Notes under the pieces: model-generated | Told to the model about the DNA's origin: nothing | Seen by the model: the letters and a program-made list of their open reading frames with translations, nothing else | The model's database searches: none | Position numbers and translations under genes: made by a program | Virus record (IMG/VR): IMGVR_UViG_3300042544_001590 | Span: 124,001 to 188,000 of that record | DNA: 64,000 nt | Direction: 5' to 3' (one strand) | Shown: positions 3,183-64,000 of the stretch, one piece after another | How positions within the stretch are numbered: position 1 is the first letter of the stretch | Layout of the letters: each line of letters begins with the position of its first letter

Positions 3183-3192
3183 ATTAAAATTG

Positions 3193-3645
3193 TTAGTAGT
3201 CGTCGGCTTGTTCAAAACCAGTGTTGGCGAAATCTGCCTTGGCATCCAGACGATGCCAAACATCGGAAACATATGTGGATGCAATCGTGATGGCGGAAAC
3301 CATCCAATCCTCAAATTCACATTCGTTTTTCATGTCATACAAACGATCTGCGTATTCAGCGAGTTTTTTCAACTCTGCCACAAGAACTTCATTAACTTCA
3401 TGCTTCTCGACATGACCAACTGGTTCAATTTCCATAACCATTCCATGTGCTTCAGGCTCATCGTCGTCACCGAAGTCATCGTCGTCACCAAAATCTGGCA
3501 TCATTCCATAATCATCATCGTCATCAAAATCATCACCCATATCATCACCAAAGTCATCATCCATCTCGTCATCGAATCTTTTGTTCATAACTCCACTACG
3601 GAAAGATTCCCAAAGCACGGCATTTTCTTCTCCTTTGAATTTCAT
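3193..3645 (-). CDS. acidic hypothetical protein, putative head-internal
   Basis: Asp-rich; C-terminal EDWMVSAITIASTYVSDVWHRLD recalls a segment common in large myovirus proteins; TAAATA-N5-ATG. Confidence 0.7.
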   Translation of the reverse strand: MKFKGEENAVLWESFRSGVMNKRFDDEMDDDFGDDMGDDFDDDDDYGMMPDFGDDDDFGDDDEPEAHGMVMEIEPVGHVEKHEVNEVLVAELKKLAEYADRLYDMKNECEFEDWMVSAITIASTYVSDVWHRLDAKADFANTGFEQADDY

Positions 3646-3653
3646 AGTAATAT

Positions 3654-4055
3654 TTAGTCCATCTGATCTAAATTATCCCGAATGTCCTGTCCTTGTTGTG
3701 CGGGACGGATGATTGGGAGGACTTTTGATTGATATAAATCCTTGGCGGTCTGTCCCGATGCTTGGATTTTCTTGATATTATCAGGTCTGCGTAGTAAATC
3801 TAAGATGTTTTCCAGAGCGATGCGATCAGTGCCGCTAGGAGGTTCCATGAGAGCCGCCAGAACCACATCCTCCATGTATCGGATTTCAGCGGGAGAACTC
3901 AGGGGGATCGTCTCCGCTGGCTCTTCTGGGGGCATCTCAGGTGCAGGAGCTTGACCTTCTTGGGGTGCCTGTTCCATACCAGCTTCAGGATTTTGTTCAT
4001 CCTGTTCCAGAATGGATTGATATCTTTCGATAAGTTGTAAGGTTTTTGATTTCAT
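3654..4055 (-). CDS. hypothetical protein
   Basis: ORF MKSKTLQLIERYQSILEQ...; packed cluster. Confidence 0.65.
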   Translation of the reverse strand: MKSKTLQLIERYQSILEQDEQNPEAGMEQAPQEGQAPAPEMPPEEPAETIPLSSPAEIRYMEDVVLAALMEPPSGTDRIALENILDLLRRPDNIKKIQASGQTAKDLYQSKVLPIIRPAQQGQDIRDNLDQMD

Positions 4056-24660: not shown

Positions 24661-25341
24661 ATGGAAAATACTAACGTCTCGTCCAACATCGCCATTTTTA
24701 CGGCAACAAAAGGTAATAACGGACAATTCCCATTAGCCCAAACAGCGTTGAAATTGAATCTGGATGAATTTATTCACCCAAAATTCAACAATCGCCAAGG
24801 ATTACCCAAGGTTTACAACGAATTCCTAGACTTGGCTATTAGGGAGAAATTTGAATACGTCATGTTCATCCACGATGATGTCCATCTGGAACACGATCCC
24901 CGCCCAAAGCTGGAGAAGCTGTTTCAGGAATACGATATCGTAGGTGTGGCAGGATGTTCCAAAGCAGAAATAGAGTCCCCCGCACTTTGGCACATCATGG
25001 GTGGGGGGTTTGGAGGTGGCTTTCTACATGGTGCGGTAGCTCACGGCAACGCTGATAGGAAGCACATGACGAGCTTTGGTGTATATCCCCATCGCGTGGT
25101 GATGATTGATGGTGTTTTCATGGCATTTAATCGGAAAGCGATTGAAACGGTGAGATTTGACGAGGCTTGCCCATCAAGCTTTCATTTTTACGATCTTTGC
25201 ATGTGTGCTTCAGCTTTAGAAAGAGGCTTGAAAATTGGGGTGGGGGATGTTATGATAACTCACGAGTCACCGGGATTGCGAGAATTTACAGAGGATTGGA
25301 AAGCTGGGGAGTCTTACTACCTAAACAAATATGGAAAATAA
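24661..25341 (+). CDS. GT-A (family 2-like) glycosyltransferase
   Basis: MFIHDDV, IVGVAG, IDGVFMA, RFDE...FHFYD pattern. Confidence 0.78.
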   Translation: MENTNVSSNIAIFTATKGNNGQFPLAQTALKLNLDEFIHPKFNNRQGLPKVYNEFLDLAIREKFEYVMFIHDDVHLEHDPRPKLEKLFQEYDIVGVAGCSKAEIESPALWHIMGGGFGGGFLHGAVAHGNADRKHMTSFGVYPHRVVMIDGVFMAFNRKAIETVRFDEACPSSFHFYDLCMCASALERGLKIGVGDVMITHESPGLREFTEDWKAGESYYLNKYGK

Positions 25342-35399: not shown

Positions 35400-36048
35400 A
35401 TTTGATGAATTGTATGAACAGGTGATTATTGAAAGTGGTCTTTCAAGAGTATGGAGAAAGATTCAAAATCATTCTTCTGGCACCATCACGGCTTTTAGGG
35501 GTGATGTCCCATATCAGCAGAATATTAGAAATAATAAAAAGATACTTGCTTATCTACAATCTAAAGGATATTCGGTGACATCTATTATGGGGACATACAT
35601 TGAAAATTTTAGAGATGAAGAAAAAAAGGAGGAGATTCACGCTAGAAATGCTGGAGGTGATCCATATGATCCCGAAGAAAGACATGTTCAAGAAAGATCA
35701 TTTTTAGTAGTAAATGATAGGGTGGAAGGTGATGATGGTGGTAAATTGGCGCACGATCTTTTTAAATTGGGGGTAGCTTTTGATCAGGATTCGGTTATGA
35801 TTATTCCCGTTGGTGGTAATAACGCATATCTGTGGGGAACATCCAAAAGAGAAGAATCGTATCCCGGTTACAATATCAAAGCTCCAGTTGGTAGTGGTAA
35901 ATATGGAAAAACATCAGGAGCATTTTTATCTAAGATTAAGGGGCGAGAATTCGCGTTTGAGGCTATCAAATCACCACAAACCATAAATGGCAAGCGTGGT
36001 CAAATGATTTCGTTGAAAGAAGTTAAGAAACAACTCAATGAAATATAA
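35389..36048 (+). CDS. hypothetical protein, putative head-internal
   Basis: MKNKFDELYEQVIIE-SGLSRV...ITAFRG...E.SFLV...DQDSV pattern. Confidence 0.65.
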   Translation: MKNKFDELYEQVIIESGLSRVWRKIQNHSSGTITAFRGDVPYQQNIRNNKKILAYLQSKGYSVTSIMGTYIENFRDEEKKEEIHARNAGGDPYDPEERHVQERSFLVVNDRVEGDDGGKLAHDLFKLGVAFDQDSVMIIPVGGNNAYLWGTSKREESYPGYNIKAPVGSGKYGKTSGAFLSKIKGREFAFEAIKSPQTINGKRGQMISLKEVKKQLNEI

Positions 36049-36439
36049 TATTTTTCTGGACGACATTCGGTTTCCCAAGGATGCTTTTCTCCAAAAAGAA
36101 TTGGCATATCTCACGGAATATTCTAAAATTCCTGAAAACGAATGGGTGATCGTGAGGAATTATGAGGATTTTGTGAAAACGATTGAAGAACGCGGTATTC
36201 CAGCGGCAGCGAGTTTTGATTGTGATTTAAATTCTGAACATTTTAGACATTATGTTAAGGATAGTATTAATTCCGGTATTTATGAATGGGAAAATTTCAA
36301 ATCTAAATGTGGAATTCATTGTGCTTTATATTTGAAATCTTTATTGTGTGATGGAGATGACACAAAAGTTTTTATACATAGTGCTAATATTATTGGTAGT
36401 ATGATTATTAGAGAAATGATGAGGGCATATTTATTTTAA
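36038..36439 (+). CDS. cyclic-phosphate-processing receiver-domain-like protein
   Basis: IFLDDIR.P, WVIVRNYEDF, SFDCDL, IHSAN..G motifs. Confidence 0.75.
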   Translation: MKYNIFLDDIRFPKDAFLQKELAYLTEYSKIPENEWVIVRNYEDFVKTIEERGIPAAASFDCDLNSEHFRHYVKDSINSGIYEWENFKSKCGIHCALYLKSLLCDGDDTKVFIHSANIIGSMIIREMMRAYLF

Positions 36440-37398
36440 ATATTTTTATTTTTTGGGATTAAAATCCATCCTTTATGTATTCCTGTTTTTGATGGTTTGT
36501 TTTCTTTTCCAGCTTTTGCTAAAAAATTAAAATCCAAATTTTTTTCTCTACAAAATTCCGCGACATTATGTATTAAATATTCCTCTCCAGTGTAAATATT
36601 TTTAATAATTCTTTTAGTTTCTTGAAAAGAATCAATATTTTTTATAAATTTTTCATATTTTCTATCTAATCTAATAGATTTTGTAGAATCTTTATAAATC
36701 CATTCCAAAAATTTGAATGCATCTTTTTGAATTGATATACTACAAAGGTTTACATATTTAGTATAATATATTTCTTGAGTTGTTATCTCTATGGTTTTTA
36801 GATAATCTTTAATAAAAATTAGACATTCTGAAGTGCTTAGAAGATTTATTCTGTATCTGTTATTGATAATAGTAACATTACCATCTCCATCAAATATACC
36901 CCTAACGAAGTGTGAATAATATTTTTCTTCGATAATTGGAAATTTAAAAGATTTTGATTTATTTTCATCAACACCGTGATTTTTTATATATTGGCAAAAT
37001 TCTTTAGAATTGACTTGTAAAAATTCTATATCATAGGTTTTTCCTGTACGTTTGTCATATCTATTGATACTTGAAATTGGACTTCCAGAATCTATAGCCT
37101 TTTTAAATTTTGGTAAAACATCTTTATCCTTTACACCAATAGTTAATTTATAGCCAGATTTTTGAATACATCCATCTGCAACAATAAAACCCAACCAGTA
37201 AGCTTTTTCGGCAGAATCAATTTTTTCGAAATATTTTATATCTAATGATCTTTTTCTCATAGGTGTTGGAATTCCATTAGAATCTAATATTTTTTTGATA
37301 TGTCTAACTGTTATGTTTAAATTCTTAGAAACCTTACTCAAACTTTGGAGCTTGAGGTATTCATCTATAACTGTTTGATGTTTTATAAATTCTTTCAT
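36436..37398 (-). CDS. free-standing LAGLIDADG homing endonuclease with N-terminal HTH
   Basis: AYWLGFIVADG and FVRGIFDGDG; very AT-rich; inverted relative to neighbours. Confidence 0.85.
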   Translation of the reverse strand: MKEFIKHQTVIDEYLKLQSLSKVSKNLNITVRHIKKILDSNGIPTPMRKRSLDIKYFEKIDSAEKAYWLGFIVADGCIQKSGYKLTIGVKDKDVLPKFKKAIDSGSPISSINRYDKRTGKTYDIEFLQVNSKEFCQYIKNHGVDENKSKSFKFPIIEEKYYSHFVRGIFDGDGNVTIINNRYRINLLSTSECLIFIKDYLKTIEITTQEIYYTKYVNLCSISIQKDAFKFLEWIYKDSTKSIRLDRKYEKFIKNIDSFQETKRIIKNIYTGEEYLIHNVAEFCREKNLDFNFLAKAGKENKPSKTGIHKGWILIPKNKNI

Positions 37399-37513
37399 AA
37401 TTATTCGGGTGTATGTTTATACTTAGTCTCCTAATCTAAAAAAACGCGTATTATCCGTGATATTATGAAAGAATATCTTGCTTGACATCCAAAATTCTTC
37501 ATTAAGTATTAAC

Positions 37514-37864
37514 ATGAAGAACAACGTAAGCACACAGGGGTATTTCATCAAGAGACTTAGAGATTCTGGATTCGCTACCATCAAGCTGTTTGACAATTAT
37601 GCACAACACGATCCTCGCAAGTGGTCGATCATGGTCGATCCCAATAATACTTCCGTGATCATCACTTGTTACCAGAACAAGGAAGCTGTGGGTGATGTGA
37701 TGTTTGAGTTCAATGATGGGGGTAATCGCTTCATTAAGAACTTTAATCTCAAGACGCAGAGCATGGAAATCGTTGTCACCACCCTGATTGAAAAAGGGGT
37801 GGAGCAAATGAATATCAACTCTGAGTATGTAAAGTCTAAGTATGAATATGGCCAAGAAGGATGA
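37514..37864 (+). CDS. hypothetical protein
   Basis: MKNNVSTQGYFIKRLRDSG; TTGACA at 37482 and TAAGTA-N5-ATG. Confidence 0.7.
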   Translation: MKNNVSTQGYFIKRLRDSGFATIKLFDNYAQHDPRKWSIMVDPNNTSVIITCYQNKEAVGDVMFEFNDGGNRFIKNFNLKTQSMEIVVTTLIEKGVEQMNINSEYVKSKYEYGQEG

Positions 37865-38165
37865 TGATCAACCGGAGGAAATCTTCAAGGATGAGCAGGT
37901 TTTGGAAGTTCTTCGGGAATCCCTGAAAAAGAAGCTTAGGAATGAGCGTAAGAAAGGTTCTCCACCACTGACAAATGATGCTCTGAAGGCTATTTTAAAG
38001 GAGTTCATGGTTTGTGGGAAACTTTTCGGATATGATCTGGATGGGAATGTCGTGGAAATCGCATTCCACGACAATAAGATGGAGGATAATGCCATGCAGA
38101 ACCTTTTTATTCAGAAATTTGGAGAGTTCATGGCTGGTAGGATGAATATTTTGGATGATTTTTAA
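37842..38165 (+). CDS. hypothetical protein
   Basis: 107 aa ORF. Confidence 0.65.
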   Translation: MNMAKKDDDQPEEIFKDEQVLEVLRESLKKKLRNERKKGSPPLTNDALKAILKEFMVCGKLFGYDLDGNVVEIAFHDNKMEDNAMQNLFIQKFGEFMAGRMNILDDF

Positions 38166-41907: not shown

Positions 41908-42115
41908 AAAGGGGTTGGTCAAAATGACCATGGAGGAATTTGCAAAATGGGCTTGCTTGGTGGAAGCATTCCATTTCATTCAACAGAGGGCGGAAGAGCT
42001 TGAAGTGAATCCAATCAACATGATCAAACCAGCAGCAATCGAAAAGTATATTGAGGAAAGATTTGAGGCAATGCTTTGGGACACTCGGATTGAACATCAA
42101 TTAGGAAATATTTGA
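41885..42115 (+). CDS. hypothetical protein
   Basis: 76 aa ORF; start uncertain. Confidence 0.55.
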   Translation: MITIKTNKKGLVKMTMEEFAKWACLVEAFHFIQQRAEELEVNPINMIKPAAIEKYIEERFEAMLWDTRIEHQLGNI

Positions 42116-42940
42116 TAACATAACAGCTTCCACTTCAATCTTGTTCATATCATCCACGGATACAACACTTTTGAACTGTTCCTTGAGAACTTTGGTATCC
42201 TGTCCCAATTCGTGGTGTCCAATCATGTAATTGCGGAAGCGATCCTTTAGGTCGTTCTTGTATGGAATGCCAGCGGGACGTTCAAAGCGGTGTAGCCAGC
42301 GCAGGAAGGGCAAGCAGAGCGTCTTCTTACCGTGTTGGCGATACTTCTCATGGATATACTTCTCCTCGCCTCCAAAGCCCCGAAACGCCTTGTTAAAGCC
42401 CAACCATGAGTCTGTTCTACAAGAGAACAATCCCATGCCTTGGGCTGGTATTTCAAATGGGGGAGCATCAACATCCTTTCCTCTTTCATCTGTTTGCCAA
42501 GTTCCCCACATGTGGGAACTCCAAGTGTCGTCAAAGTGGGTGGAATAATGATGGAAATCGTCATATAGTAATGGACCTTGTAAAAGATTTCCAGCATCTC
42601 CCCCACAATCATACAAATGAATCAGCTTTTTCAAAGCACCGGGGACGATCATCACATGACTGTCCATGCAAAGGGTGTATGGGGTATCGGACAGGGAAAA
42701 AACCTTATTTTTAACGGTTGATGCGTTGTATTTGGTGAATGGTAGATACTGATAGGGTTCCTTGATCCAATTTGTCAGATTTCTATTTGATTGTCCATGG
42801 GGGGAATCTGGATTATTATCAATGATAATAAATTCAATATTATTTAGGACTTCTCGATGATATGTTCTAATGGCTTGAATGCTGAAATATAATCCGTCGT
42901 AATCATTGTAGGTGGGAATACCAATCGTGAGTTTTCGCAT
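42101..42940 (-). CDS. GT-A glycosyltransferase with ppGalNAc-T-like motifs
   Basis: LTIGIPTYN, MDSHV (DxH), GFGGEE...PFLRWLHRF. Confidence 0.8.
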   Translation of the reverse strand: MRKLTIGIPTYNDYDGLYFSIQAIRTYHREVLNNIEFIIIDNNPDSPHGQSNRNLTNWIKEPYQYLPFTKYNASTVKNKVFSLSDTPYTLCMDSHVMIVPGALKKLIHLYDCGGDAGNLLQGPLLYDDFHHYSTHFDDTWSSHMWGTWQTDERGKDVDAPPFEIPAQGMGLFSCRTDSWLGFNKAFRGFGGEEKYIHEKYRQHGKKTLCLPFLRWLHRFERPAGIPYKNDLKDRFRNYMIGHHELGQDTKVLKEQFKSVVSVDDMNKIEVEAVMLSNIS

Positions 42941-42951
42941 GTGAATAATTA

Positions 42952-43437
42952 TCAGAACCCAAGCTTTTTACAATAACTTTCACATTCAATAGGCACAACT
43001 GTTCCAGTTCTTGGAACAGTTGTTGTGGTCGTTGTGGTCGTAGTCGTTGTTGTGGTGGTCGTAGTTATTTGAATGGTGAATGGATTGAGAGATGTCGGGG
43101 GTATTAGATCAATAACTAACGGGGGAATGGTTCGTGTTGTAAAGTTCGGAATGACGGGGGAATTGATTACTGGTGGGTTTGGAGGGGGCGCACAGCAATC
43201 ACTTAAAGATGGTGTCGTGGAAGAACCTGATGGTGTTGTTCCAGTGGTGCTTGTGGGGGGTTCTGGCGTGGTGGTGCCTGAGAGAGTAGTGGTGGTGCTT
43301 GTGGGGGGTTCTGTAGTGATGGGGGGTTCTGGCGTGGTGCTGGTAGTACTCGTGGTGCCTGAGAGAGTAGTGCTGGTGCTTGTGGTGGGTTCTGGCGTGG
43401 TGGTGCCTGAGAGAGTAGTGGTGGTGCTTGTGGGCAT
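42952..43437 (-). CDS. mucin-like Thr/Pro/Ser-rich protein
   Basis: Repeats of TSTTTTLSGTTTPEP, long poly-Thr run, Cys-containing segments. Confidence 0.7.
   Translation of the reverse strand: MPTSTTTTLSGTTTPEPTTSTSTTLSGTTSTTSTTPEPPITTEPPTSTTTTLSGTTTPEPPTSTTGTTPSGSSTTPSLSDCCAPPPNPPVINSPVIPNFTTRTIPPLVIDLIPPTSLNPFTIQITTTTTTTTTTTTTTTTVPRTGTVVPIECESYCKKLGF
43258..43433 (-). repeat. coding tandem repeats in the mucin-like gene
   Basis: Three near copies of ggttctggcgtggtg...gtgcctgagagagtagt...gtgcttgtgg. Confidence 0.8.
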
Positions 43438-43460
43438 TACAGTGTCAAAGTATATTTACA

Positions 43461-43928
43461 TTATACGATCATATAATTTACATCGGAAACGATGTAAAAA
43501 GTGTTGGAATCGTTGGAAGCCGATAGTGTTGACCACTCAACCGAAGTGACCCGAACCAGATTATCAATCTGAACACCCCCCAGAGCTTGGTTTGTATCAC
43601 TAATCACACCAGAACCTCCAATTTTTTCCCAATCGGATAATAGAGAACCATCATTTACAGATAGGCGATATAATACATTCGCATCACTATTATATGCTAG
43701 ATCGCCAATTTCAGCAGGGGCAAAGATAGTAACATCTGGATTCGATCCTTTAAACACATTACCTGTCAACACTCCCCCATTATCAGCACCATTCCCGATG
43801 AAAAGACGTTCGGTATCGGTGGTGAATGCGAATTCCCCGGAATTTAAAAGGACATTTAAACGTTCTGCGTTAGTTCCTTGACGGGCAAGCAACTTTAAAA
43901 GGGTGTCGTTGGTGATTGATATTGACAT
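43461..43928 (-). CDS. tail-fibre N-terminal (Mtd_N-like) module protein
   Basis: RQGT.AER......GEFAFTTDTERLFIGNG motif. Confidence 0.65.
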   Translation of the reverse strand: MSISITNDTLLKLLARQGTNAERLNVLLNSGEFAFTTDTERLFIGNGADNGGVLTGNVFKGSNPDVTIFAPAEIGDLAYNSDANVLYRLSVNDGSLLSDWEKIGGSGVISDTNQALGGVQIDNLVRVTSVEWSTLSASNDSNTFYIVSDVNYMIV

Positions 43929-43929
43929 A

Positions 43930-44988
43930 TTAGTATGTGAAGATTGGGATTGCGAATCTATTTACCGTTTTTCCGGTTTCGGATGTATTCCCCGCAAATG
44001 TGATGAATCCAGCGGAAGATAAGGTGATTGATATGGAAGAAAGACCATTGGAAGACAGTGCTGTGAAACTTGTCAATTGTATTCCGGGAACCACACCATC
44101 CGTGAGTTGTGATGGACTACCATTGAATAGTGTGGATAGGGAATTATTGGTGGAATTTCCAGTCAGAGTATCATAAATTGTCAGCGCGTCCTTGGAAATG
44201 GCTTCCCAATTTGATAATGCCGTGGATGGCAATGATTGTAATTGGTAGATTACTTTATCAACCGATGCAGTGTTCCCTACTTTGGCGGGAAGTCCACTGA
44301 GGGCATTATAGGCAGACACGGGGAGGTGTGATTGGGTGTTTAGACCATAAGCTGAAATTCTGGCGTAATTTGCCGAAAGTATTCCAGACTGGAATGTGAA
44401 ATCGGTGGGGGAAACGGTCAGAGATATCGGTCTTCCATTACCACCACTCAATCCATTGCTAAATGAAGACGATAAAAGTTCTCTTGTAGTGATTCCACCA
44501 GTCTTGATTGAAAGTTGGTTGGATGATATTTCAAAAAAGTTTGTTCTATAATTTAGTTGGATTTTTCCATCAATGATATTGACACCATTTGTAACGGTGT
44601 TTGGGTTAATTTTGGAAGCGGATAATCCACTAACAGCCATATTAACGGTGGAAGACGAATCATATATAAATTCGGAAGAGAATTTGGTTCTCATGTCCCC
44701 CCAATTTGTTATGACACTATAAGGGGATGCTGTAAGCTGATACCAGATGGAATTAACGGAAACTAAGTCTCCAACTTCAGCCAAAGTGGTGCTAAGGCTA
44801 TAATAATTATTCAGAGGGGGGTGAATTTTGCTGGAAACTGGATTACCCCCACTCAACACTCCATTACCAACGAATAGACGTTTGGAATCTGTTGCGTGAA
44901 CAAGTTCTCCTTGGTCGAAACGGGTTGAATTGATCTCAGCGTTTGTTCCTCTACGAACTTTGATTTTTGAAATGTAAATGTCTGCCAT
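43930..44988 (-). CDS. tail-fibre-like protein with Mtd_N-like N-terminus
   Basis: IKVRRGT...QGELVHATDSKRLFVGNG; Ser/Thr/Asn-rich beta body. Confidence 0.65.
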   Translation of the reverse strand: MADIYISKIKVRRGTNAEINSTRFDQGELVHATDSKRLFVGNGVLSGGNPVSSKIHPPLNNYYSLSTTLAEVGDLVSVNSIWYQLTASPYSVITNWGDMRTKFSSEFIYDSSSTVNMAVSGLSASKINPNTVTNGVNIIDGKIQLNYRTNFFEISSNQLSIKTGGITTRELLSSSFSNGLSGGNGRPISLTVSPTDFTFQSGILSANYARISAYGLNTQSHLPVSAYNALSGLPAKVGNTASVDKVIYQLQSLPSTALSNWEAISKDALTIYDTLTGNSTNNSLSTLFNGSPSQLTDGVVPGIQLTSFTALSSNGLSSISITLSSAGFITFAGNTSETGKTVNRFAIPIFTY

Positions 44989-45000
44989 GGTTCTATTTTA

Positions 45001-45630
45001 TTATGTTAAGCGTTTCCATATATAAACACCAAAAGACGGTGGGGTGATGTTATGTGCTAATGATCCACCCGTTTCTTCTATAATATTACTGTAAGAACCA
45101 TATTCCAAAATGCTGTCCATACCAGAAAAACCGTTTCCGTCTCTGAGTGTGTCGGTGTTTTCTCCCCCGGTGCCGTTCCTTACTCTGTGGCTATGTGCTG
45201 GAATTTCATTTGTTGTTAATGTGTGTTGATATTCTCCAGCATTTGATCCGGGAGATATCGTTTTATTTACCCCGTTGGTATCCGTTCCAGTGCCAACTCC
45301 CGCCAAGAATACACCATCAGAAATTTTAACCCAAGTGGTTCCCACAAATCGAGTTTGGGGATTGACATCTAAAGTATCAAGATAAACTGCCCCGACCGGA
45401 TAAAGATAATCGATAATACTGGGATAACCAGTCAATGTGAGACAATCCGCTGATAAACACCCACTAACAGATGCACCGTTTCCAGCAGAACCCAACCTTA
45501 AAGAAGATTTGTTACCCAATCCATCATAAACAGGGGGTAAATTTGCTTCAGATAGTGGAACATTTGCAGTGTGTAGAACACCTTTGTAACTATCAGCGAC
45601 GAATAAATTGGTTAAATCTGGTAAAGCCAT
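45001..45630 (-). CDS. baseplate/tail-collar protein (gp10 C-terminal-like domain)
   Basis: YPVGAVY...NP...GTTWVKI...HTLT.NEIPAHSH...HNITPP..VYIWKR. Confidence 0.7.
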   Translation of the reverse strand: MALPDLTNLFVADSYKGVLHTANVPLSEANLPPVYDGLGNKSSLRLGSAGNGASVSGCLSADCLTLTGYPSIIDYLYPVGAVYLDTLDVNPQTRFVGTTWVKISDGVFLAGVGTGTDTNGVNKTISPGSNAGEYQHTLTTNEIPAHSHRVRNGTGGENTDTLRDGNGFSGMDSILEYGSYSNIIEETGGSLAHNITPPSFGVYIWKRLT

Positions 45631-52699: not shown

Positions 52700-54784
52700 T
52701 TAAGCCGAATGGAATAATGATAAAGACTGATAAAGAGTATCCCGCAAAGAAATGTTCATCATTTCCGAGTTATAATCAAAATCAAATTCCTCAAAGATCG
52801 GTTCCGATGTTTCAGTGAGAATTGGATCACCATTCTCATCCCTCAGAACATGTTTGGATGAAAGGTTATCATAGAGGGTGTAATCATACACAATGCTATT
52901 GTCAACGAGGGTGTTTTCATATCCTGATTGATATTCAAAGAACAGATAATACTTCTCCAGATCAGAATATTGGTATGTATCGGGAAGAACCAAAGGCCAA
53001 CCCCAATTTGCATTGTATCCAGATAGCATGTAAGCACTCAGTCCGGTTGATTCCGTGGGTTGCTCGGTGTTTAACAACACATAGCGGTTGGAGAATTTTT
53101 CGAGGGCTACAATGGGAGTTCCCGCTGATATGATGTAGGTATCAGTGTTTATCTCATCCCCCAGATTGGTTCCAAAGATTTCTTTGGAGGAGAATCCCTT
53201 GATATCAAAATTCTCCTTAAATTTGTTATTATATCCAATCAACTTGTTCTTGCTGATTGATCCCAAGTCCAGAATACGCTTGATTTTCTCAGGATATGTG
53301 AAAAGGTTGGATTCAAACACATCATTGTCAACTCCCGTCATTTTCATTTGGGAAATCAGGGAGAATATTTCTCCTCTATCCACATCTTGGGTGTTTTCCA
53401 CGAAATTGGTGATCTTTTCATAGATTTTCTTACCAAGGGTGTCATAAGAAGAACTAAGTGTTCCAAACGCCGATCCCATAAAATCATCAAACAATACCGT
53501 CTTATCCAAAAGGAATTCTTGGAATCTCAAACCCTTAAATGTCTCTTGGGCATCAAAATCTTCATTTCTCTTTTCAATGGAAATATAATTTTTAGGATAT
53601 ACGTCGAAATAATCGGTGACACCAGCCAAGGAATAAGAAGTTCCCTGATCGTTAGTGGTAGTGAGGGAAGCACTCAACTGGACATAATGAACAACACTAT
53701 CGATGTTGAATTTCACCTTACCTCTGGCCGAACCGTAATAAGCTCCCACATCTTCCAATTCATAATAGGAAGAATTCATAACATCGCCGCTTGACAATAC
53801 TATAACATTGACATCAGAAGCGGAAAGCAAGGGGAAGTTCTTGACGCTGAAATTCTCCGAATCCTTGATCTTGACTACAAATGGGATATCAACTTGAGCA
53901 AATTTTCTCCCATCAATGTTGAAAGAATCAATCTCATAGAATTCCCCATCCAGACCATTGCTGGTGATGGACAAATCTTCAACTTCATCATTATCCACGA
54001 TAAGAGCCGATAGAGAAATCTTGGCATTATTCCGATTGTTGAGATATTCCACACTTCTATCGAAAAACAGGTCAATGTTGATTCGGTTGATGGAATCATC
54101 CTTGAAATGGATATCCTTGGTTCCCGATACCCCCACAAAAAATGAATTGTTGTCGCTTTCCGTGGCATTTATCAGATTGGTTCCCGATATCTTGGCATAG
54201 ACGGAAGTATTTTCAGTGGTAATGCGATCAATCTCCTGATATTGGTAGCTTGAGAGATAATTATTATAAATTTTCTCGTGGAAAGCATAGGTCTTATCCA
54301 AATGACGGAATTTATCCACATCATCGAAGTAATAATCGCTGTTGCTGCCACTGATACGATAGAATAGGCTTGTGATGGGAATGGTGGGGGGATAATATGC
54401 TCGTATTGTGATAGGATCACTAATTTGCCCCAATTTCCATGAAATATTATCATAATAGGTGGGACTATCAAAATCTACGGTGAACGTGTGCTTGAGATAA
54501 TCAATGATGTGGATGATCTTGTATTCTGTGGAAATCACAGCATTGGAATAGCAATCATAGAGGGTGAAATTGACGACATATTTACCCGGATTTTCCCAAT
54601 ACTTCTGAGCAGTCAGAGAAGAGGAAATCGTACCATCTCCAAAGTCCCATAAGACCCGAACATAGCTGAAATCATCCAGATCGGGAATGAACCGAAGCGG
54701 TGTCTGTTCCAAAGCATAGGAACTCAATACATTTTCGTTCTTCCAATCCAGAACATCAAATTCAATATCGCTAAAAATGCTCAT
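52700..54784 (-). CDS. PKD-domain baseplate-region protein
   Basis: VLWDFGDGT...H.W.NPGKY.V PKD-like motif; follows gp6. Confidence 0.7.
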   Translation of the reverse strand: MSIFSDIEFDVLDWKNENVLSSYALEQTPLRFIPDLDDFSYVRVLWDFGDGTISSSLTAQKYWENPGKYVVNFTLYDCYSNAVISTEYKIIHIIDYLKHTFTVDFDSPTYYDNISWKLGQISDPITIRAYYPPTIPITSLFYRISGSNSDYYFDDVDKFRHLDKTYAFHEKIYNNYLSSYQYQEIDRITTENTSVYAKISGTNLINATESDNNSFFVGVSGTKDIHFKDDSINRINIDLFFDRSVEYLNNRNNAKISLSALIVDNDEVEDLSITSNGLDGEFYEIDSFNIDGRKFAQVDIPFVVKIKDSENFSVKNFPLLSASDVNVIVLSSGDVMNSSYYELEDVGAYYGSARGKVKFNIDSVVHYVQLSASLTTTNDQGTSYSLAGVTDYFDVYPKNYISIEKRNEDFDAQETFKGLRFQEFLLDKTVLFDDFMGSAFGTLSSSYDTLGKKIYEKITNFVENTQDVDRGEIFSLISQMKMTGVDNDVFESNLFTYPEKIKRILDLGSISKNKLIGYNNKFKENFDIKGFSSKEIFGTNLGDEINTDTYIISAGTPIVALEKFSNRYVLLNTEQPTESTGLSAYMLSGYNANWGWPLVLPDTYQYSDLEKYYLFFEYQSGYENTLVDNSIVYDYTLYDNLSSKHVLRDENGDPILTETSEPIFEEFDFDYNSEMMNISLRDTLYQSLSLFHSA

Positions 54785-58390: not shown

Positions 58391-60229
58391 TTACCAATTC
58401 TTGCAGCTTTCGGCTTTGGGGGTTCCGGGTTTCGCTTTATCGCAACCATGTCTTGCTCGAAATGCTTTCTTTCTATCAGTGTTTCCACTATCACCAGTTG
58501 CTTTCACACCTTTTTGTCCAAAATGGATTCTTTTATAACCCGAACCATCGGGGTCTTTTACACATTTAGTATATTTTTTACCCTTACGATCACTGGATGC
58601 TTTTTGAGTAACTTTGGTGCATTTCTTGGATTTTTCTAAGAACACGGCAACTTCCTGAAGATCAATCATGAAGTCGTTGATATCAACATTGAAAGATGAT
58701 GCGTATTTGTTTGCCAATTCATCAAAGGATTCGTTCACCGTTCCTTCATCTCTCATTCCTTGCACGGTGGACAACAATTGCGTTGCACTGTTAGCACCAC
58801 TTCTGGTTATAGACCAAAATCCCTTGAGTCGTGAATTGATAATATCCTTGGATGTTTTATTAAATGGTAAATTCTTGACAAGTTTCTTTAATTCTGGGAT
58901 GGCGGCATTCCATTGATCCTTTGACTTGATTTCTTCCAATTTCTTGATGAACTCTTCCATTGCCATATAACGGGGATCAACATCCAAATTCTCCAAAGGA
59001 ATGGTTTTTCTTTCCATACCTCGACCCGCAATGGAATTGAAGAATTTTTGTAATGATTGTGCTGGAAGTTCTCCGACTCTCCGCATCACTCCAATGTTTA
59101 TGTTGCGATTCAATGTGCGGGGATCAAAATTTTCCAATCCTCTATCGAATCGATTTACATGATAATCAATAAATGAAAATATGGGATTATCATCAGTTGT
59201 TAATTTTTTCAATAATCCCAATTTATAAAGAAAATCTGTTTTATTAACATTTAAAAAATCAACCCCGGTGGGTATTTCACTATCTGATATTCCATGCTCT
59301 ATTTTTAACATATCCAATATCCCTGCTGCTTTGTTGTTGATTAAACTTTTCACCTTCGCCAATACAGTATCATTGGATTTCATATTGTTGGATGTTTTTG
59401 TTTCTATTTTTGAATTTATTTCTTCAAATCGTTCATCCGCAGCGTTTGAAGCCTTTATAGCATTTATCAATTTTTTTTCAGCATCTTCTAATTTACTTTG
59501 AACGGAAGATAATTTTTTAACATCTTGTAAAAGAATAGATAATTCTATCTCCGCTTGCTGGATTTGACCGCTTAGGGTTTCCTTTTTTTCTTTAATCCTA
59601 GTATTCTTTTTTTCGGTTTTTTTTCTTTGGATAAAGGATTTGATTTGATCGATTCTATCACTACCATATAAAGAACTATCAAGAATTTCTTTGAGTCTAT
59701 TCACTTCGTCTCTCGCATCCGAAGCTTGTCCCGCTCTTTTTTGTTGAGAGACGAGAGCATTATTCCACTCTTTTTCATTATCATCATTTATAGTATCTAT
59801 TCTTAATCCTCCTACCAGTTTAATTTTACCATCTATATCTTCTTTCTTTTCACCGCTGTATATTTTTTTAAAATCTTCAAAGAATGTTTTGGAATTGAAT
59901 AGGATTGCAAAAGCATTAGCCATTTCTCTATCTCGCGCAGCTTTCAATTCATAGGTATCCTGTTGACTAACACCTTTGGAGGTGTCATAAAGATATTTTT
60001 TCATCTGATCTATTGGTTTTTGCTTTTCAAAATTGTCAACTTTGCCAACAGGACTGGACGAATAACCAGAGGAAGTTGATGCTCCAGCAACTCCCCCATC
60101 GGCTGTAATACCAGCTTGTTGCCCACTGATATTCTGTGGTCCTATATTTCGTTGCGCCCTAAAATACGCATCTCCCCCGCGAGTTCCCTTTGCTTCCAGC
60201 GCCAAATTATATAAATCATCAAAGTTCAT
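58391..60229 (-). CDS. large late protein with basic Cys-containing C-terminal domain
   Basis: TAAATA-N5-ATG; C-terminal KRIHFGQKG...RKKAFRARHGC...SCKNW. Confidence 0.7.
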   Translation of the reverse strand: MNFDDLYNLALEAKGTRGGDAYFRAQRNIGPQNISGQQAGITADGGVAGASTSSGYSSSPVGKVDNFEKQKPIDQMKKYLYDTSKGVSQQDTYELKAARDREMANAFAILFNSKTFFEDFKKIYSGEKKEDIDGKIKLVGGLRIDTINDDNEKEWNNALVSQQKRAGQASDARDEVNRLKEILDSSLYGSDRIDQIKSFIQRKKTEKKNTRIKEKKETLSGQIQQAEIELSILLQDVKKLSSVQSKLEDAEKKLINAIKASNAADERFEEINSKIETKTSNNMKSNDTVLAKVKSLINNKAAGILDMLKIEHGISDSEIPTGVDFLNVNKTDFLYKLGLLKKLTTDDNPIFSFIDYHVNRFDRGLENFDPRTLNRNINIGVMRRVGELPAQSLQKFFNSIAGRGMERKTIPLENLDVDPRYMAMEEFIKKLEEIKSKDQWNAAIPELKKLVKNLPFNKTSKDIINSRLKGFWSITRSGANSATQLLSTVQGMRDEGTVNESFDELANKYASSFNVDINDFMIDLQEVAVFLEKSKKCTKVTQKASSDRKGKKYTKCVKDPDGSGYKRIHFGQKGVKATGDSGNTDRKKAFRARHGCDKAKPGTPKAESCKNW

Positions 60230-61058: not shown

Positions 61059-61775
61059 ATGGCACAATATAATAACAAAGATCAGCGCAATCTGGAAGAA
61101 CTCCTTGAAGAAGGGTGGATGGATCGTCTCAAGGCACGGGGAGCCGAAGCTTTGGGTTCCGTCAAAGGAGTGGGGCAACAAATCAAAGGTGGCTTTCAAC
61201 AAGCTGCTGGCAGTGGCTTGAGTAAGGCTGGAGATTGGCTTGAAAGCGATAAGATTTCTCGTAAAGGGGATAAATACACGCAACAAGGTCAAAAAAGTGA
61301 GCGAGAAGGAAGCGTCTCTGGTCACAATGCCAAAGTCCAGTATCTTCAGAAGAATATTGACAAACGTATTGACTCATTTGTTGCCGATATCAAAAATGAT
61401 ATTAAAAAGCTTGGTCTGGACATTGGTAACATTGAAATCGTGTCTGGTATCAATGCTGCTCTTGGACAACTCAAGAAAAGCGTGAGCGGTGCAACACCTC
61501 CTCCTTTACCACAACAATCTGGCGCAACACCTCCTCCTTTACCCCAACAATCTGGCGCAACACCCCCACCACTTCCAAAACAACAAACACCGGAGCCAGA
61601 AGAGGATGAGCCGGAAAATCCCGTGGAATACTCTTACAGAAAAGCTATTAGTAGGAAGAAAAAAACACAACCAAACACTAATCCCCGTAAAAGTAAGGTG
61701 AGAAAAGACCCATTTGCAAAATATGCCGCTCCCGAACAGGAAGAGGATTTGGACAAGATGTTTTGGGAACGCTAA
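61059..61775 (+). CDS. hypothetical late protein with Pro-rich repeats
   Basis: Start MAQYNNKD by TAAATA-N5 rule; GATPPPLP(Q/K)Q x3. Confidence 0.7.
   Translation: MAQYNNKDQRNLEELLEEGWMDRLKARGAEALGSVKGVGQQIKGGFQQAAGSGLSKAGDWLESDKISRKGDKYTQQGQKSEREGSVSGHNAKVQYLQKNIDKRIDSFVADIKNDIKKLGLDIGNIEIVSGINAALGQLKKSVSGATPPPLPQQSGATPPPLPQQSGATPPPLPKQQTPEPEEDEPENPVEYSYRKAISRKKKTQPNTNPRKSKVRKDPFAKYAAPEQEEDLDKMFWER
61488..61586 (+). repeat. 33-bp coding tandem repeat x3
   Basis: gg(t/c)gcaacacc...ccacaacaatct units. Confidence 0.8.
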
Positions 61776-62686
61776 AACAATTCCTCAAGCTGTAACAAGC
61801 AAGCAATACCACAAATCTCCCTGTCCGTAACGGATATCATCTTAAACAGGTTCTCCGCAATGATAAGGATAGCCTGTTTTTTTGTGGTATCATCCAAGGA
61901 TAAATCATAAAAATAGTTCAACAGGTCTTTCAGAAGGGATTCGTGATCGGAATCGAACAATTCCTCGTTCTCAATCAGAAATTTGCGTGTTTTCAGGGTA
62001 TCTCCCGATTTGAGATTGGTGTAAATCAAATCCATCACCTGATTGGTGTCTTTTTTCGTCTCAATGGAGAGAATCCCTGATTTTGAATATTTTTCCAATT
62101 CATTGATACATTTCCTGATATCGGGATAATGGCTTTTGATCAGGGCAACCAATGGTTTCTTCTGATCATCAGGAATCTCAATTTCCTCTTTTTTCAGAAT
62201 CTCCAGACACCTACGAGTAACATCTTTCAGGGATGTGTGGAGTGTGAGACTCTGGCAACGCGATTGGAGGGCGGGAATGATGCGATGCTTGTAATTGCCC
62301 GTGAGAATGAAACGTGTGGTGGATGAATAGGATTCCATGACATTCCTCAAAATTGCCATGGAACTTTTTGATAGATAATCAGCCTCATCCAAAATGACAA
62401 TTTTCAATCCCCCGTCAAAGCTCTTCGTTTGGGAGAATCCGATAACTTTATCCCTGATCGTATCCACCCCATTCTCATCGGAAGCGTTAATGTAAAGATA
62501 ATCACAATTTAGGATATCCTTTGCCAATATTTTGGCCAATGTTGTTTTACCAACACCACAAACCCCCGTCAATAATAGATTTGGAACATCTTTACCAAAA
62601 TCTTCGATGATTTTTCTGGTGGTGTCATCCACCATTAAATCGTCTAGCGTCTGTGGTCTGTAACGTTCTGTCCAAGGATTGCTCAT
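61772..62686 (-). CDS. gp44: clamp loader AAA+ subunit (gp44/RFC-small-like)
   Basis: WTERYRPQTL, GVCGVGKTT, INASDENGVDTIR, ILDEAD, ALQSRC. Confidence 0.92.
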   Translation of the reverse strand: MSNPWTERYRPQTLDDLMVDDTTRKIIEDFGKDVPNLLLTGVCGVGKTTLAKILAKDILNCDYLYINASDENGVDTIRDKVIGFSQTKSFDGGLKIVILDEADYLSKSSMAILRNVMESYSSTTRFILTGNYKHRIIPALQSRCQSLTLHTSLKDVTRRCLEILKKEEIEIPDDQKKPLVALIKSHYPDIRKCINELEKYSKSGILSIETKKDTNQVMDLIYTNLKSGDTLKTRKFLIENEELFDSDHESLLKDLLNYFYDLSLDDTTKKQAILIIAENLFKMISVTDREICGIACLLQLEELF

Positions 62687-63435
62687 ATGCCTACCAAACC
62701 AATAGCATGGTTTGAGCGATTGTCAATAGTCCGAACCAAATTTGCACAATCCAATAGACTGTCATATGTGCCAACGTCGAACCAAAATCCATCCAATTTC
62801 TCAACACCAACACCTTCTTTATCATTCATCATGCGAATCAGGTCAACAATTTCCAGTTCTCCTCTAGCAGATGGTTTGACTTTTTTAGCCATTTCCACAA
62901 CTTCATTGGAAAACACATAAAGACCAATCACTGCATCTTCGGAAATAAATTCTTTCGGTTTCTCCACAATTTGAATAATATTGCCATCTTCATCTGTTTC
63001 AACCACACCATAGGCGGATGGGTCTTTCACTTTATATGTGTAGATGGTGTTCGGTTGTGGTTGTATTGGGGAATTACCAATAATAACATTATCACCAAGA
63101 ATCAGGCAGATTTCATCTGCATCTTTGACAAATTCTTCCCCAACGATAAAAGCATCGACTAATCCTTTGGGAGAATCTTGGATTGCGTATGATAGATTTA
63201 ATCCGAATTTACTCCCATCTCCAAGTAGAATCTTGAATTGTTTTTGTTGATCCTCGTCGGCATTAATGATGAGGATATCAACATATCCCATATCTTTCAG
63301 CGTTTGAAGTGGAAATGCGATGCAGGGCTTGTTGAAAATTGGTAAAAGTTGCTTTGATATAACCTTGGTAATCGGGTATAATCTCGTAGCTTTTCCGCCC
63401 GCCAAAATTAGACCACGTTTAATCGTTTCTTGCAT
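62683..63435 (-). CDS. rmlA: glucose-1-phosphate thymidylyltransferase (RmlA/RfbA)
   Basis: GLILAGGKATRLYP.T...SKQLLPIFNKP, Q..PKGL..AF, LILGDN, SARGELEI. Confidence 0.9.
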   Translation of the reverse strand: MQETIKRGLILAGGKATRLYPITKVISKQLLPIFNKPCIAFPLQTLKDMGYVDILIINADEDQQKQFKILLGDGSKFGLNLSYAIQDSPKGLVDAFIVGEEFVKDADEICLILGDNVIIGNSPIQPQPNTIYTYKVKDPSAYGVVETDEDGNIIQIVEKPKEFISEDAVIGLYVFSNEVVEMAKKVKPSARGELEIVDLIRMMNDKEGVGVEKLDGFWFDVGTYDSLLDCANLVRTIDNRSNHAIGLVGI

Positions 63436-64000
63436 ATTTCTCCTCTATTTCGTTTTTAATTCTCTTATCTTCCGCTTGTTTCTCAAGCATTTTCTCAAAA
63501 CATTCCTTCATCACATCCTTCTCAAATCGCATCTCATAGATTTCCTTTGATTTGGAGCCATCCAGAACACAATTGCTTCTTCCAGTGGCAATGGGAAGAT
63601 CGGCAAGATATACGAATTTCCAATTATCGTTGTGGAATCCGTATTCTTTCATGACATCACACACTTCCTGTGTGGTTAATGCCTGTGGATTGATGACATT
63701 GTAGATGTTCTGTCCTTTCCATTTACCGACTTTTTTAATCAAAAGATTCTTCACAAATTCGCAGAAATCGGGGATATATGTCTTGGAGTTCTTGAAATTG
63801 ATCAAATCGTCGTATTGTCTAATTTTGTTCAAATAATTCCTATTAGATGATTCGTAATGGAATGGCATACGAACCCTCAGAATGATATTATCCATATTTT
63901 TTGATAAATTTTCAAAAGCGTGTTTTGATTTGGAATAAAATGAAGCCCTATTACAGAATAATCCATAATTTGGGGAATCTTCCTCGTTCCACACTTTCTC
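63419..64000 (-). CDS. RmlD-like SDR reductase/epimerase (partial, 5' end outside window)
   Basis: YSKSK (YxxxK), IILRVRMPF, IYNVINP; adjacent to rmlA; frame open to window edge. Confidence 0.7.
   Translation of the reverse strand, partial: EKVWNEEDSPNYGLFCNRASFYSKSKHAFENLSKNMDNIILRVRMPFHYESSNRNYLNKIRQYDDLINFKNSKTYIPDFCEFVKNLLIKKVGKWKGQNIYNVINPQALTTQEVCDVMKEYGFHNDNWKFVYLADLPIATGRSNCVLDGSKSKEIYEMRFEKDVMKECFEKMLEKQAEDKRIKNEIEEKYARND

Follow-up and report, generated by a model that had tools for sequence, protein, structure and literature searches.

A tail-module glycosyltransferase gene of a T4-like phage lies next to a gene for a threonine-rich protein

At the end of the tail-fibre genes of a lake-water T4-like phage, a gene for a protein made up largely of threonine, serine and proline is followed immediately by a glycosyltransferase gene. 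This arrangement raises the question of whether the two form an enzyme-substrate pair, that is, whether the phage sugar-coats one of its own tail-module proteins. An earlier note on this DNA, drawn from the sequence alone, had proposed just that, in the form of a mucin-type O-glycosylation system. To explore the proposal, we analyzed a 64,000-nt stretch of the phage genome, hereafter the window (IMG/VR record IMGVR_UViG_3300042544_001590), together with related phage, metagenome and bacterial loci.

We first asked whether the two genes are as the note described them, and they are: its observation of a Thr/Pro/Ser-rich protein followed 11 nt downstream by a GT-A enzyme holds. In the 161-aa protein, Thr accounts for 0.37 and Thr+Ser+Pro for 0.65 of the residues. 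It contains four Cys, three TSTTTTLSGTTTPEP-type repeats and a 16-residue poly-Thr run, and ends in ...PIECESYCKKLGF. Its stop codon lies at 42952-42954 and the next ATG at 42938-42940. The 279-aa enzyme contains MDSHV (residues 92-96), GFGGEEKYI (188-196) and PFLRWLHRF (211-219). The two genes are the last of the minus-strand tail/baseplate run, toward which plus-strand genes converge at 42115. The Mtd_N fibre modules mentioned in the note were likewise confirmed, along with a Gp10_C domain.

Given its extreme composition, the absence of any database family and an open reading frame (ORF) of equal length on the opposite strand, the 161-aa ORF might be suspected of being a low-complexity artefact. 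We consider this very unlikely. The frame, its C-terminal module and its position are kept in more than 30 lineages at 26-92% identity, and the opposite-strand ORF is the predictable Val/Gly mirror frame of the Thr codons and overlaps the end of the upstream gene. Moreover, the poly-Thr run uses all four Thr codons, so that selection is on the protein rather than on a DNA slippage repeat; Tandem Repeats Finder returned only weak 9- and 15-nt periodicity.

Table 1. Coordinates of the gene pair, its segments and other features of the window.
Feature	Position (strand)	Description	Basis
Glycosyltransferase	42101..42940 (-)	279-aa soluble GT-A enzyme; D41, D93-x-H95, GFGGEE (188-193) and H217-R-F invariant or nearly so across the family; predicted fold closest to GT27 catalytic domains; no lectin domain, no membrane segment	Pfam; two family alignments; AlphaFold2; Foldseek and profile searches against PDB
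Thr/Ser/Pro-rich protein	42952..43437 (-)	161 aa; presumed acceptor; minimal carrier of the conserved C-terminal module	ORF calls; homologues directly upstream of the enzyme gene in 33 enzyme lineages
Repeat region	43207..43437 (-)	Residues 1-77; variable mucin-like TS/TP repeats, differing in number between near-identical phages (proteins of 113, 158 and 161 aa; 149 against 215 aa in another lineage); replaced or preceded by globular, Cys-containing domains in relatives	Comparison of related loci
Pro-rich segment	43066..43197 (-)	Residues 81-124; CC pair (81-82), then a conserved segment (PPxxPPxxPxFTTxTxPPL...NPF/L); predicted extended, not globular	Module alignment; AlphaFold2 of the module
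Poly-Thr run	43018..43065 (-)	Residues 125-140; 16 Thr in mixed ACN codons; most likely glycosylation target	Sequence; poly-Thr conserved in phage homologues and in partners of bacterial relatives
C-terminal Cys tag	42955..42993 (-)	Residues 149-161, PIECESYCKKLGF; general form C-x(2-9)-C-x(1-2)-L-x-[FYW]-COOH; the two Cys and the Leu are the only invariant columns of the module	Survey of related loci; module alignment
Mtd_N protein	43461..43928 (-)	155 aa; fibre N-terminal module; syntenic with the pair in related phages	Pfam; related loci
Mtd_N protein	43930..44988 (-)	352 aa; syntenic with the pair	Pfam; related loci
Gp10_C protein	45001..45630 (-)	209 aa; baseplate/fibre domain; places the pair in the tail module	Domain searches
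Mirror-frame ORF	43073..43549 (+)	Gly/Val-rich; mirror frame of the Thr codons, not a gene	ORF calls
RmlA-like protein	62683..63435 (-)	Sugar-1-phosphate nucleotidyltransferase, about 20 kb away; possible donor supplier, by conjecture only	Pfam PF00483
ORF next to RmlA-like gene	63419..63994	No Pfam match	Pfam
Second glycosyltransferase	24661..25341 (+)	Glyco_tranf_2_5; could extend the glycan, no link shown	Pfam

To assess what kind of enzyme the 279-aa protein is, we predicted its structure with AlphaFold2 (pLDDT 95.8) and searched the model against PDB with Foldseek. The top 37 hits were polypeptide GalNAc-transferase (GT27) catalytic domains from animals and Toxoplasma (E down to 6e-14; TM 0.65-0.73 over about 300 aligned columns), whereas the first GT2 enzyme, TarP, followed only at TM 0.52. 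This comparison of GT27 against GT2, like the co-occurrence analysis below, had been named in advance as a test of the proposal, and both came out in its favor. In an alignment of 44 sequences down to 42% identity, D93, H95, H217, R218 and F219 were invariant, and G188, E192 and E193 nearly so, consistent with a GT27-like arrangement of DxH plus a distal His as putative metal ligands.

At the sequence level, by contrast, similarity to GT27 was not significant: phmmer and hmmsearch against PDB returned GalNAc-T7 as the only GT27 member, at E 0.24-0.29, and identity in the structural alignments was about 15%. A 96-residue profile of the C-terminal region found nothing in PDB. A longer profile of the C-terminal half hit only GalNAc-T7, and at E 0.29 aligned GFGGEEKY with WGGENFE—the Asn being replaced by Glu—and WlHRF with RVGHIY, thereby placing H217 on the His of RVGH. 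Glyco_transf_7C was the second most frequent Pfam match among family members, below threshold, and PF02709 was below threshold in 7 of 44 members. Pfam assigned only the generic GT2 family PF00535 (34.5 bits against a cut-off of 23.3, residues 5-143 only), which matched all 44 members. Yet the DxD motif of that family is absent, the position being invariantly D-S/C-H. The enzyme also lacks the ricin-type lectin domain and type II membrane anchor of GT27 members: it is a single domain whose first strand starts at residue 4, with no further Pfam domain.

We next set out to determine how strictly the pair co-occurs, and found the co-occurrence to be very strong. A word-indexed homologue search with the C-terminal module of the 161-aa protein returned only one protein, owing to its low complexity, and we therefore collected the module from the loci themselves. 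This revealed that the conserved partner is not the mucin-like protein as such but a C-terminal module, namely a Thr/Pro-rich tract followed by a Cys tag of the form C-x(2-9)-C-x(1-2)-L-x-[F/Y/W]-stop, carried by very different proteins of about 100 to over 1300 aa. Among 6376 open frames in 107 related phage and metagenome loci, 66 end with the tag, and 65 of these lie on the enzyme's strand, directly upstream of it or in tandem arrays there. In 33 of the 64 enzyme lineages (90% clusters) with enough upstream sequence to judge, the tag ORF stops 11-30 nt before the enzyme's start, although shared ancestry inflates these synteny counts. About half of the assessable lineages have no tag ORF, and some sit next to replication genes (as at related loci L021 and L149). 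The tag-linked enzymes form one subtree (4 changes against a shuffled mean of 24). Pfam searches of ten carrier proteins gave a single hit, a beta-helix domain typical of tailspikes in one large carrier.

These data bear on the possibility that the enzyme acts on a non-protein acceptor—host envelope polysaccharide, LPS precursors or phage DNA—and lies beside the Thr-rich gene only because the end of the tail operon is a common place for accessory genes. In favor of this view, Pfam sees only generic GT2, the N-terminal half of the enzyme resembles TarP and chondroitin synthase, most phage glycosyltransferases described so far modify DNA or host surface glycans, some relatives lie among replication genes, and the window has another glycosyltransferase and an RmlA-like gene. 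However, chance insertion does not explain the 11-30 nt spacing to a tag-ending ORF in 33 separate lineages with very different carriers, and the enzyme has no membrane segment, which lipid-linked acceptors would usually require. Together with the poly-Thr partners and PqqD fusions of the bacterial relatives described below, which point to peptide substrates, this leaves a non-protein acceptor unlikely.

Closer inspection of the module showed the tag to be more constant than the poly-Thr run. In some marine lineages, the last 30 residues before the tag contain few Thr, although Thr/Pro tracts lie within about 40 residues. AlphaFold2 of the 90-residue module gave no fold (pLDDT 68, no secondary structure), implying that it does not conceal a globular domain, at least as a monomer. 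The invariance of the two Cys suggested an alternative in which the enzyme S-glycosylates a Cys of the tag and the Thr tract is only a spacer. SunS-type GT2 enzymes S-glycosylate Cys in small Cys-rich peptides, and in glycocin F the modified Cys is C-terminal. We regard this alternative as improbable. The partners of bacterial relatives have poly-Thr tails but no Cys tag, making Thr the shared feature; the nearest folds are Thr/Ser-directed GT27 enzymes, with no SunS-type structure among the top 50. Further, no double-glycine leader, peptidase-transporter or immunity gene was seen among the ORFs listed within about 2.5 kb upstream and 1.5 kb downstream of the enzyme gene, which are fibre proteins and convergent unrelated genes.

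A further alternative is that the pair acts in fibre assembly rather than in decorating the virion. The gene directly downstream of a fibre gene is the usual chaperone position in T4-like phages, the tag lies at the extreme C-terminus, where fibre folding often starts, and the window's protein has no globular domain. In this view, the module would be a folding or registration element that may be removed, the enzyme would help assembly with or without catalysis, and the 161-aa protein itself would not be in the virion. This too appears unlikely, as residues of catalytic type are invariant from phages to bacteria, arguing for a working enzyme, and tandem arrays of small tagged proteins with different heads (related loci L005, L018, L114 and L120) look like exposed, diversifying parts.

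Independent support came from bacterial relatives of the enzyme at about 50% identity. In 32 of 80 loci these lie near ORFs with poly-Thr runs, and in 18 of these a conserved Tat-like leader precedes the Thr tail of a small protein. Thr, with its mirror-frame Val, was the only strongly enriched homopolymer of 8 or more residues (12 loci, against 0-5 for the other residues tested). The bacterial enzymes are fused to PqqD peptide-recognition domains and HprK-related kinase A domains. Cultured bacteria with the related cassette include Bradyrhizobium diazoefficiens, Oricola indica and Desulforhopalus singaporensis.

Taken together, these findings favor, somewhat more likely than not, a reading in which the two genes form an enzyme-substrate pair. 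The enzyme would be a soluble, metal-dependent GT-A transferase with D93, H95 and H217 as its likely metal ligands and with the GGEE loop apparently sitting where the Gal/GalNAc-T motif sits in GT27. Late in infection, in the host cytoplasm, it would transfer a sugar from a nucleotide sugar to Thr hydroxyls in the Thr-rich tract of the protein encoded 11 nt upstream, above all those of the poly-Thr run, yielding a stiff, extended, mucin-like glycosylated stalk. The Cys tag, specific to the phage version, most likely serves as a handle that docks the enzyme, or as the piece that joins or registers the chain on the tail or baseplate. Since in related phages the same module ends large fibre- or spike-like proteins or small proteins with globular heads, it would represent a portable stalk-plus-tag for tail-module proteins. 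What our analysis shows is the gene anatomy, the predicted fold, the conservation of catalytic-type residues, the synteny and the poly-Thr link in bacteria; catalysis and metal binding, the transfer to Thr, the role of the tag and incorporation into the virion are inferred from sequence and predicted structure alone, without biochemical, proteomic or transcript evidence, and leave the sugar and its anomeric linkage undefined.

The interpretation offered in the earlier note is thus supported only in part. Its enzyme-substrate pairing stands as the favored reading, yet the 161-aa protein is a minimal carrier of the conserved module rather than the conserved partner itself. The 'mucin-type' label (alpha-GalNAc from UDP-GalNAc) has no support, as membership of GT27 fails by sequence, the lectin domain and membrane anchor are absent, and the conserved second acidic residue of GGEE resembles inverting GT7 as much as retaining GT27. 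The proposed glycosylated bristle on the virion, its role in adhesion or shielding, and the supply of donors by RmlA are inference only, and the RmlD named in the note was not found next to the RmlA-like gene.

Among known systems, the GT27 enzymes (e.g. human GalNAc-T2 and Toxoplasma GalNAc-T3) are the best structural neighbors over the whole enzyme and share the DxH motif plus a distal His, a GGE-type loop, only marginally aligned by sequence, 25 residues before that His, and acceptors—presumed ones in the phage—that are Thr-rich, Pro-containing, unstructured tracts. They differ in having a stem in addition to the lectin domain and anchor, in working in the Golgi rather than, as we infer for the phage enzyme, in the cytoplasm, and in carrying Asn after GGE. 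Generic GT2 enzymes such as TarP, a wall teichoic acid GlcNAc-transferase, and the chondroitin polymerase K4CP match the N-terminal nucleotide-binding half by sequence (E 1e-6 to 1e-4), but not the C-terminal half or the metal site (DxH...H rather than DxD), and their acceptors are polymers, not proteins. In mycobacteriophages, phage-encoded glycosyltransferases reportedly decorate the phage's own structural proteins at C-terminal regions (Freeman et al. 2023, as cited in PMC12619734). The pair described here likewise ties a phage-encoded glycosyltransferase genetically to a structural-module protein with a presumed C-terminal acceptor region. The targets there are reported to be capsid and tail-tube subunits of siphoviruses of Actinobacteria, whereas here the context is the tail-fibre module of aquatic T4-like myoviruses, with a different enzyme family and a dedicated Thr-tract-plus-Cys-tag module. 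Glycocin S/O-glycosyltransferases (SunS type, GT2) share the arrangement of a small GT-A enzyme encoded next to a Cys-containing peptide substrate, but the presumed substrate here is Thr-dominated, can exceed 1300 aa and lacks the leader, transporter and immunity context. The bacterial 'HPr-rel-A' type cassettes (HprK-related kinase A TIGR04352, PqqD, PF14907 nucleotidyltransferase), to which the bacterial relatives are fused or adjacent and which are, as far as we could find, uncharacterised, share the enzyme family and the poly-Thr partner. The phage version has no kinase, PqqD or nucleotidyltransferase, and its partner carries the Cys tag instead of a Tat-like leader.

It is possible, albeit only tentatively so, that bacteria and aquatic T4-like phages share a previously unrecognised protein glycosylation system in which a GT27-like cytoplasmic enzyme family coats poly-Thr tails. 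Bacteria would mark the substrates with a Tat-like leader and recruit the enzyme through the fused PqqD and HprK-like domains, whereas phages would have captured the enzyme and coupled it to the portable module, placing it on tail fibres, spikes and small head-bearing bristles. If so, this would be the first virion glycosylation system of aquatic myoviruses and a prokaryotic counterpart, possibly a relative, of the enzymes that start mucin-type glycosylation in eukaryotes. Literature searches on poly-Thr together with glycosyltransferases, PqqD or HPr kinase, and on GT27 in phages, found no description of such a system.

Phage glycosyltransferases are usually read as DNA or host-surface modifiers, and glycosylation of the phage's own virion proteins is documented only in mycobacteriophages. 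The present enzyme family has more than 1500 members at 90% clustering, on contigs of up to about 200 kb from lakes and oceans, and a simple sequence signature for its partner, making for a directly testable system of one enzyme and one short peptide. Should the reading be confirmed, many abundant aquatic myoviruses would carry glycosylated stalks on their tail appendages, with consequences for adsorption, stickiness to particles and grazing. It would also provide a compact soluble enzyme for making mucin-like glycopeptides, allow testing of whether GT27-type enzymes have prokaryotic or viral relatives, and suggest a candidate function for the uncharacterised bacterial cassettes with poly-Thr-tailed, Tat-leader proteins.

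Neither megablast of the region nor tblastn of the enzyme returned a match among GenBank phages, leaving no cultured relative, and PHROGs and NCBIfam gave nothing for either protein. No metatranscriptome run contained the locus, and scans for the T4 late-promoter consensus, sigma-70 promoters and terminators were uninformative. With respect to sugar supply, the RmlA-like gene of the window matched its family profile at E 2e-54.

The uncultured T4-like myovirus from lake water that harbors the window (IMGVR_UViG_3300042544_001590; roughly 207 kb) has a DNA polymerase that is only about 30% identical to those of cultured T4-like phages, and more than ten lake metagenome runs contain the region. 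A long minus-strand run of baseplate and fibre genes ends with a Gp10_C protein, two Mtd_N proteins and then the two genes of interest, with plus-strand genes converging just beyond. The first of the pair encodes a protein that is 37% Thr and 65% Thr+Ser+Pro, contains four Cys, and returned no match in Pfam, PHROGs or NCBIfam. The second, beginning eleven nucleotides further on, encodes a glycosyltransferase. The observation made in the earlier note, namely a mucin-like protein gene next to a polypeptide GalNAc-transferase-like gene in the tail module, is confirmed. Every detail it listed is present in the sequence, except that of the RmlA and RmlD genes it had named as possible sugar-donor suppliers we could confirm only an RmlA-like gene.

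Positions of the features in the window and in related loci (L numbers denote collected phage, metagenome and bacterial loci that encode relatives of the enzyme).
Location	Strand	Feature
window 42101-42940	-	279-residue glycosyltransferase
window 42952-43437	-	161-residue Thr/Ser/Pro-rich protein
window 43073-43549	+	158-aa Gly/Val-rich ORF opposite the Thr-rich gene
window 43461-43928	-	Mtd_N protein
window 43930-44988	-	Mtd_N protein
window 45001-45630	-	Gp10_C protein
window 24661-25341	+	second glycosyltransferase (Pfam Glyco_tranf_2_5, E 1e-9)
window 36001-38000		lowest-GC stretch of the window (0.307)
window 36436-37398	-	LAGLIDADG homing-endonuclease-like ORF
window 52700-54784	-	tail-module protein with a PKD domain (residues 27-82)
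window 58391-60229	-	another tail-module protein, with a C-terminal DUF5754 match (27.2 bits against a Pfam cut-off of 27.4)
window 61772-62686		clamp-loader gene
window 62683-63435	-	RmlA-like sugar-1-phosphate nucleotidyltransferase (PF00483, E 2e-54)
window 63419-63994		ORF without a Pfam match, adjacent to the RmlA-like gene
L005:3014-4989; L018:3-2002; L114:2228-3987; L120:1834-3990		tandem arrays of two or three tagged proteins in related phages
L145, L151, L155, L157, L158, L161, L168, L172, L173: about 3107-3970		upstream ORF of a marine sub-lineage (287-aa protein)
L038:4131-4896; L050:7421-7933; L046:6951-7881; L031:4514-4906		small proteins with a Tat-like leader and a poly-Thr tail in bacterial loci

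At the sequence level, Pfam assigned only the generic GT2 domain, covering the N-terminal half of the enzyme. The family is large, comprising more than 1500 clusters at 90% identity, mostly unnamed and many on contigs of 100-200 kb, and about 1700 clusters at 50%. Across 44 sequences down to 42% identity, D41, D93, H95, H217, R218 and F219 are invariant, and G188, E192 and E193 of the GFGGEE loop are nearly so. An AlphaFold2 model of high confidence (pLDDT 95.8, pTM 0.92) was compared with the PDB, where its 37 best neighbours are all polypeptide GalNAc-transferase (GT27) catalytic domains from human, mouse, fly and Toxoplasma, with E-values down to 6e-14 and TM 0.65-0.73 over about 300 columns at about 15% identity. 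The first other family, represented by the GT2 enzyme TarP, follows at TM 0.52.

By sequence, the N-terminal half resembles TarP and chondroitin polymerase, whereas a profile of the C-terminal half returned a single, weak PDB hit, GalNAc-T7 (E 0.29), in an alignment that places fGGEEgY on WGGENFE and LPfLrWlHRf on VPCSRVGHIY. In GalNAc-T2, D224, H226 and H359 bind Mn2+ and E334 lies 25 residues before H359; here, E192 lies 25 residues before H217. The enzyme is therefore predicted to be shaped like a GT27 catalytic domain and, as inferred from its conserved residues, would work like one. It is nevertheless not a member of GT27 by sequence, lacks both the lectin domain and the membrane anchor, and carries a second acidic residue in its GGEE loop, as in inverting GT7 enzymes.

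To explore the genomic surroundings of this family, we collected 27 viral and 80 metagenome loci encoding relatives of the enzyme. In the closest lineages (63-100% identity), the ORF immediately upstream is always Thr/Ser/Pro-rich (0.45-0.78, apart from one array member at 0.29 in locus L018) and ends in the same way, with a module consisting, in order, of one or two Cys, a Pro-rich segment, a poly-Thr run of up to 19 residues, a few residues, and C-x(2-9)-C-x(1-2)-L-x-[F/Y/W]-stop. When this last motif was generalised, 66 of 6376 open frames of at least 40 codons in the 107 loci were found to end with it, of which 65 lie on the enzyme's strand, directly upstream of it or in tandem arrays there. 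Clustering of the enzymes at 90% identity yielded 72 lineages, and in 33 of the 64 with enough upstream sequence to judge, a tag-ending ORF stops 11-30 nt before the enzyme's start codon. Such spacing in 33 lineages is hard to reconcile with a non-protein acceptor and an accidental adjacency of the two genes. On a tree of the enzymes, the tag-linked ones fall in one subtree, in which 32 of 37 rows carry the tag, and the label needs 4 changes against a shuffled mean of 24, although shared ancestry contributes to this clustering. One marine sub-lineage of the enzyme (nine loci, L145 to L173) has no Cys-tag ORF and instead a conserved upstream protein ending ...NPNTSFTTVSNITAIPA.

Inspecting the carriers of the module revealed that they differ widely. 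Some are minimal mucin-like proteins, as in the window; some are proteins of 270-330 residues with Cys-containing globular heads, sometimes two or three in a row (L005, L018, L114 and L120); and others have 680 to more than 1300 residues, one of which has a beta-helix domain typical of tailspikes. In the tandem arrays, the N-terminal Cys-containing globular domains differ while the C-terminal module is the same, resembling a diversifying set of heads on a common stalk. Likewise, the number of mucin-like repeats changes between near-identical phages while the module stays the same. The module is predicted to be extended rather than globular, and the two Cys and the Leu are the only invariant columns in its alignment. 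The conservation of frame and module, together with the mixed Thr codons, excludes the possibility that the Thr-rich ORF is spurious. In contrast, the Gly/Val-rich ORF on the opposite strand is the mirror frame of ACN codons, overlaps the end of the upstream gene, and is an artefact; the same Val-run mirror effect appears in the bacterial loci.

An independent line of evidence comes from bacteria, where relatives at about 50% identity are common in Alphaproteobacteria, Desulfobacterota and other phyla. There, the enzyme domain is usually part of a larger protein, fused to HprK-related kinase A, PqqD (a peptide-recognition element), GT25, GT4, methyltransferase or epimerase domains, and lies beside a PF14907 nucleotidyltransferase. 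In 32 of 80 such loci there is an ORF with a run of five or more Thr, and in 18 the run forms the tail, in some cases almost pure poly-Thr, of a small protein that begins with a Tat-like twin-arginine leader and a conserved W-x-K-P-V-V...V-P-A-H-A segment, often in two tandem copies. Thr, along with its mirror-frame Val, is the only homopolymer of eight or more residues that is strongly enriched in these loci (12 loci, against 0-5 for the other residues tested). These small proteins, examples of which lie beside multidomain HprK-rel-A/PqqD/GT/GT25 proteins, are unannotated, and our literature search returned no paper describing the arrangement. What the phage and bacterial arrangements share is this enzyme family plus a poly-Thr tract, which makes the Thr tract the most economical candidate for the acceptor. 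S-glycosylation of a Cys within the tag would be an alternative, given that the tag is more constant than the poly-Thr run, but the bacterial partners have no such Cys.

We propose that, late in infection, the soluble enzyme would add sugars, of a kind that cannot be inferred from the sequence and with equally undefined stereochemistry, to the Thr tract of the upstream protein in the cytoplasm, turning it into a stiff, mucin-like stalk. The C-terminal Cys tag is specific to phages and, in this view, would be either the docking handle for the enzyme or the element that attaches or registers the chain on the tail. Its constancy next to variable N-terminal parts suggests the C-terminus to be the fixed end and the N-terminus the exposed end. 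While the predicted fold, the conserved residues, the synteny and the bacterial parallel emerge directly from our analysis, the transfer to Thr, the role of the tag and incorporation into the virion are inferred, and an assembly or chaperone role without virion decoration remains a rival reading.

The interpretation offered in the earlier note is partly supported: its core inference, an enzyme-substrate pair with a polypeptide GalNAc-transferase-like enzyme, passed both computational checks that the note itself had proposed, the structure search and the co-occurrence analysis. Its labels ‘mucin-type’ and ‘virion bristle’ and the suggested link to sugar supply are, on present evidence, conjecture, and the partner is better described as a portable C-terminal module than as one mucin-like protein. 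Among known enzymes, GT27 polypeptide GalNAc-transferases are the closest; the predicted fold, the metal-site pattern and the inferred acceptor type are the same, whereas the sequence family, domain architecture, presumed cellular compartment and possibly the stereochemistry differ. The closest known biology is virion glycosylation in mycobacteriophages, which reportedly involves other enzyme families, other target proteins and no dedicated tag. No GenBank phage carries this enzyme, and the open literature searched here does not describe the pairing. Phage-encoded glycosylation of the phage's own structural-module proteins has a precedent, to which the present candidate would add a new enzyme lineage and a new, easily recognised putative substrate module.

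With respect to possible hosts, a short contig of 3613 nt binned with a Flavobacterium genome (L028) carries the phage-type enzyme at 69% identity. This is probably phage DNA in the bin and could be either a weak hint at the host or mere contamination. Elsewhere in the window, the second glycosyltransferase sits among replication genes, the RmlA-like gene lies next to the clamp-loader gene, and the LAGLIDADG homing-endonuclease-like ORF, located in the lowest-GC stretch, is probably a mobile insertion.
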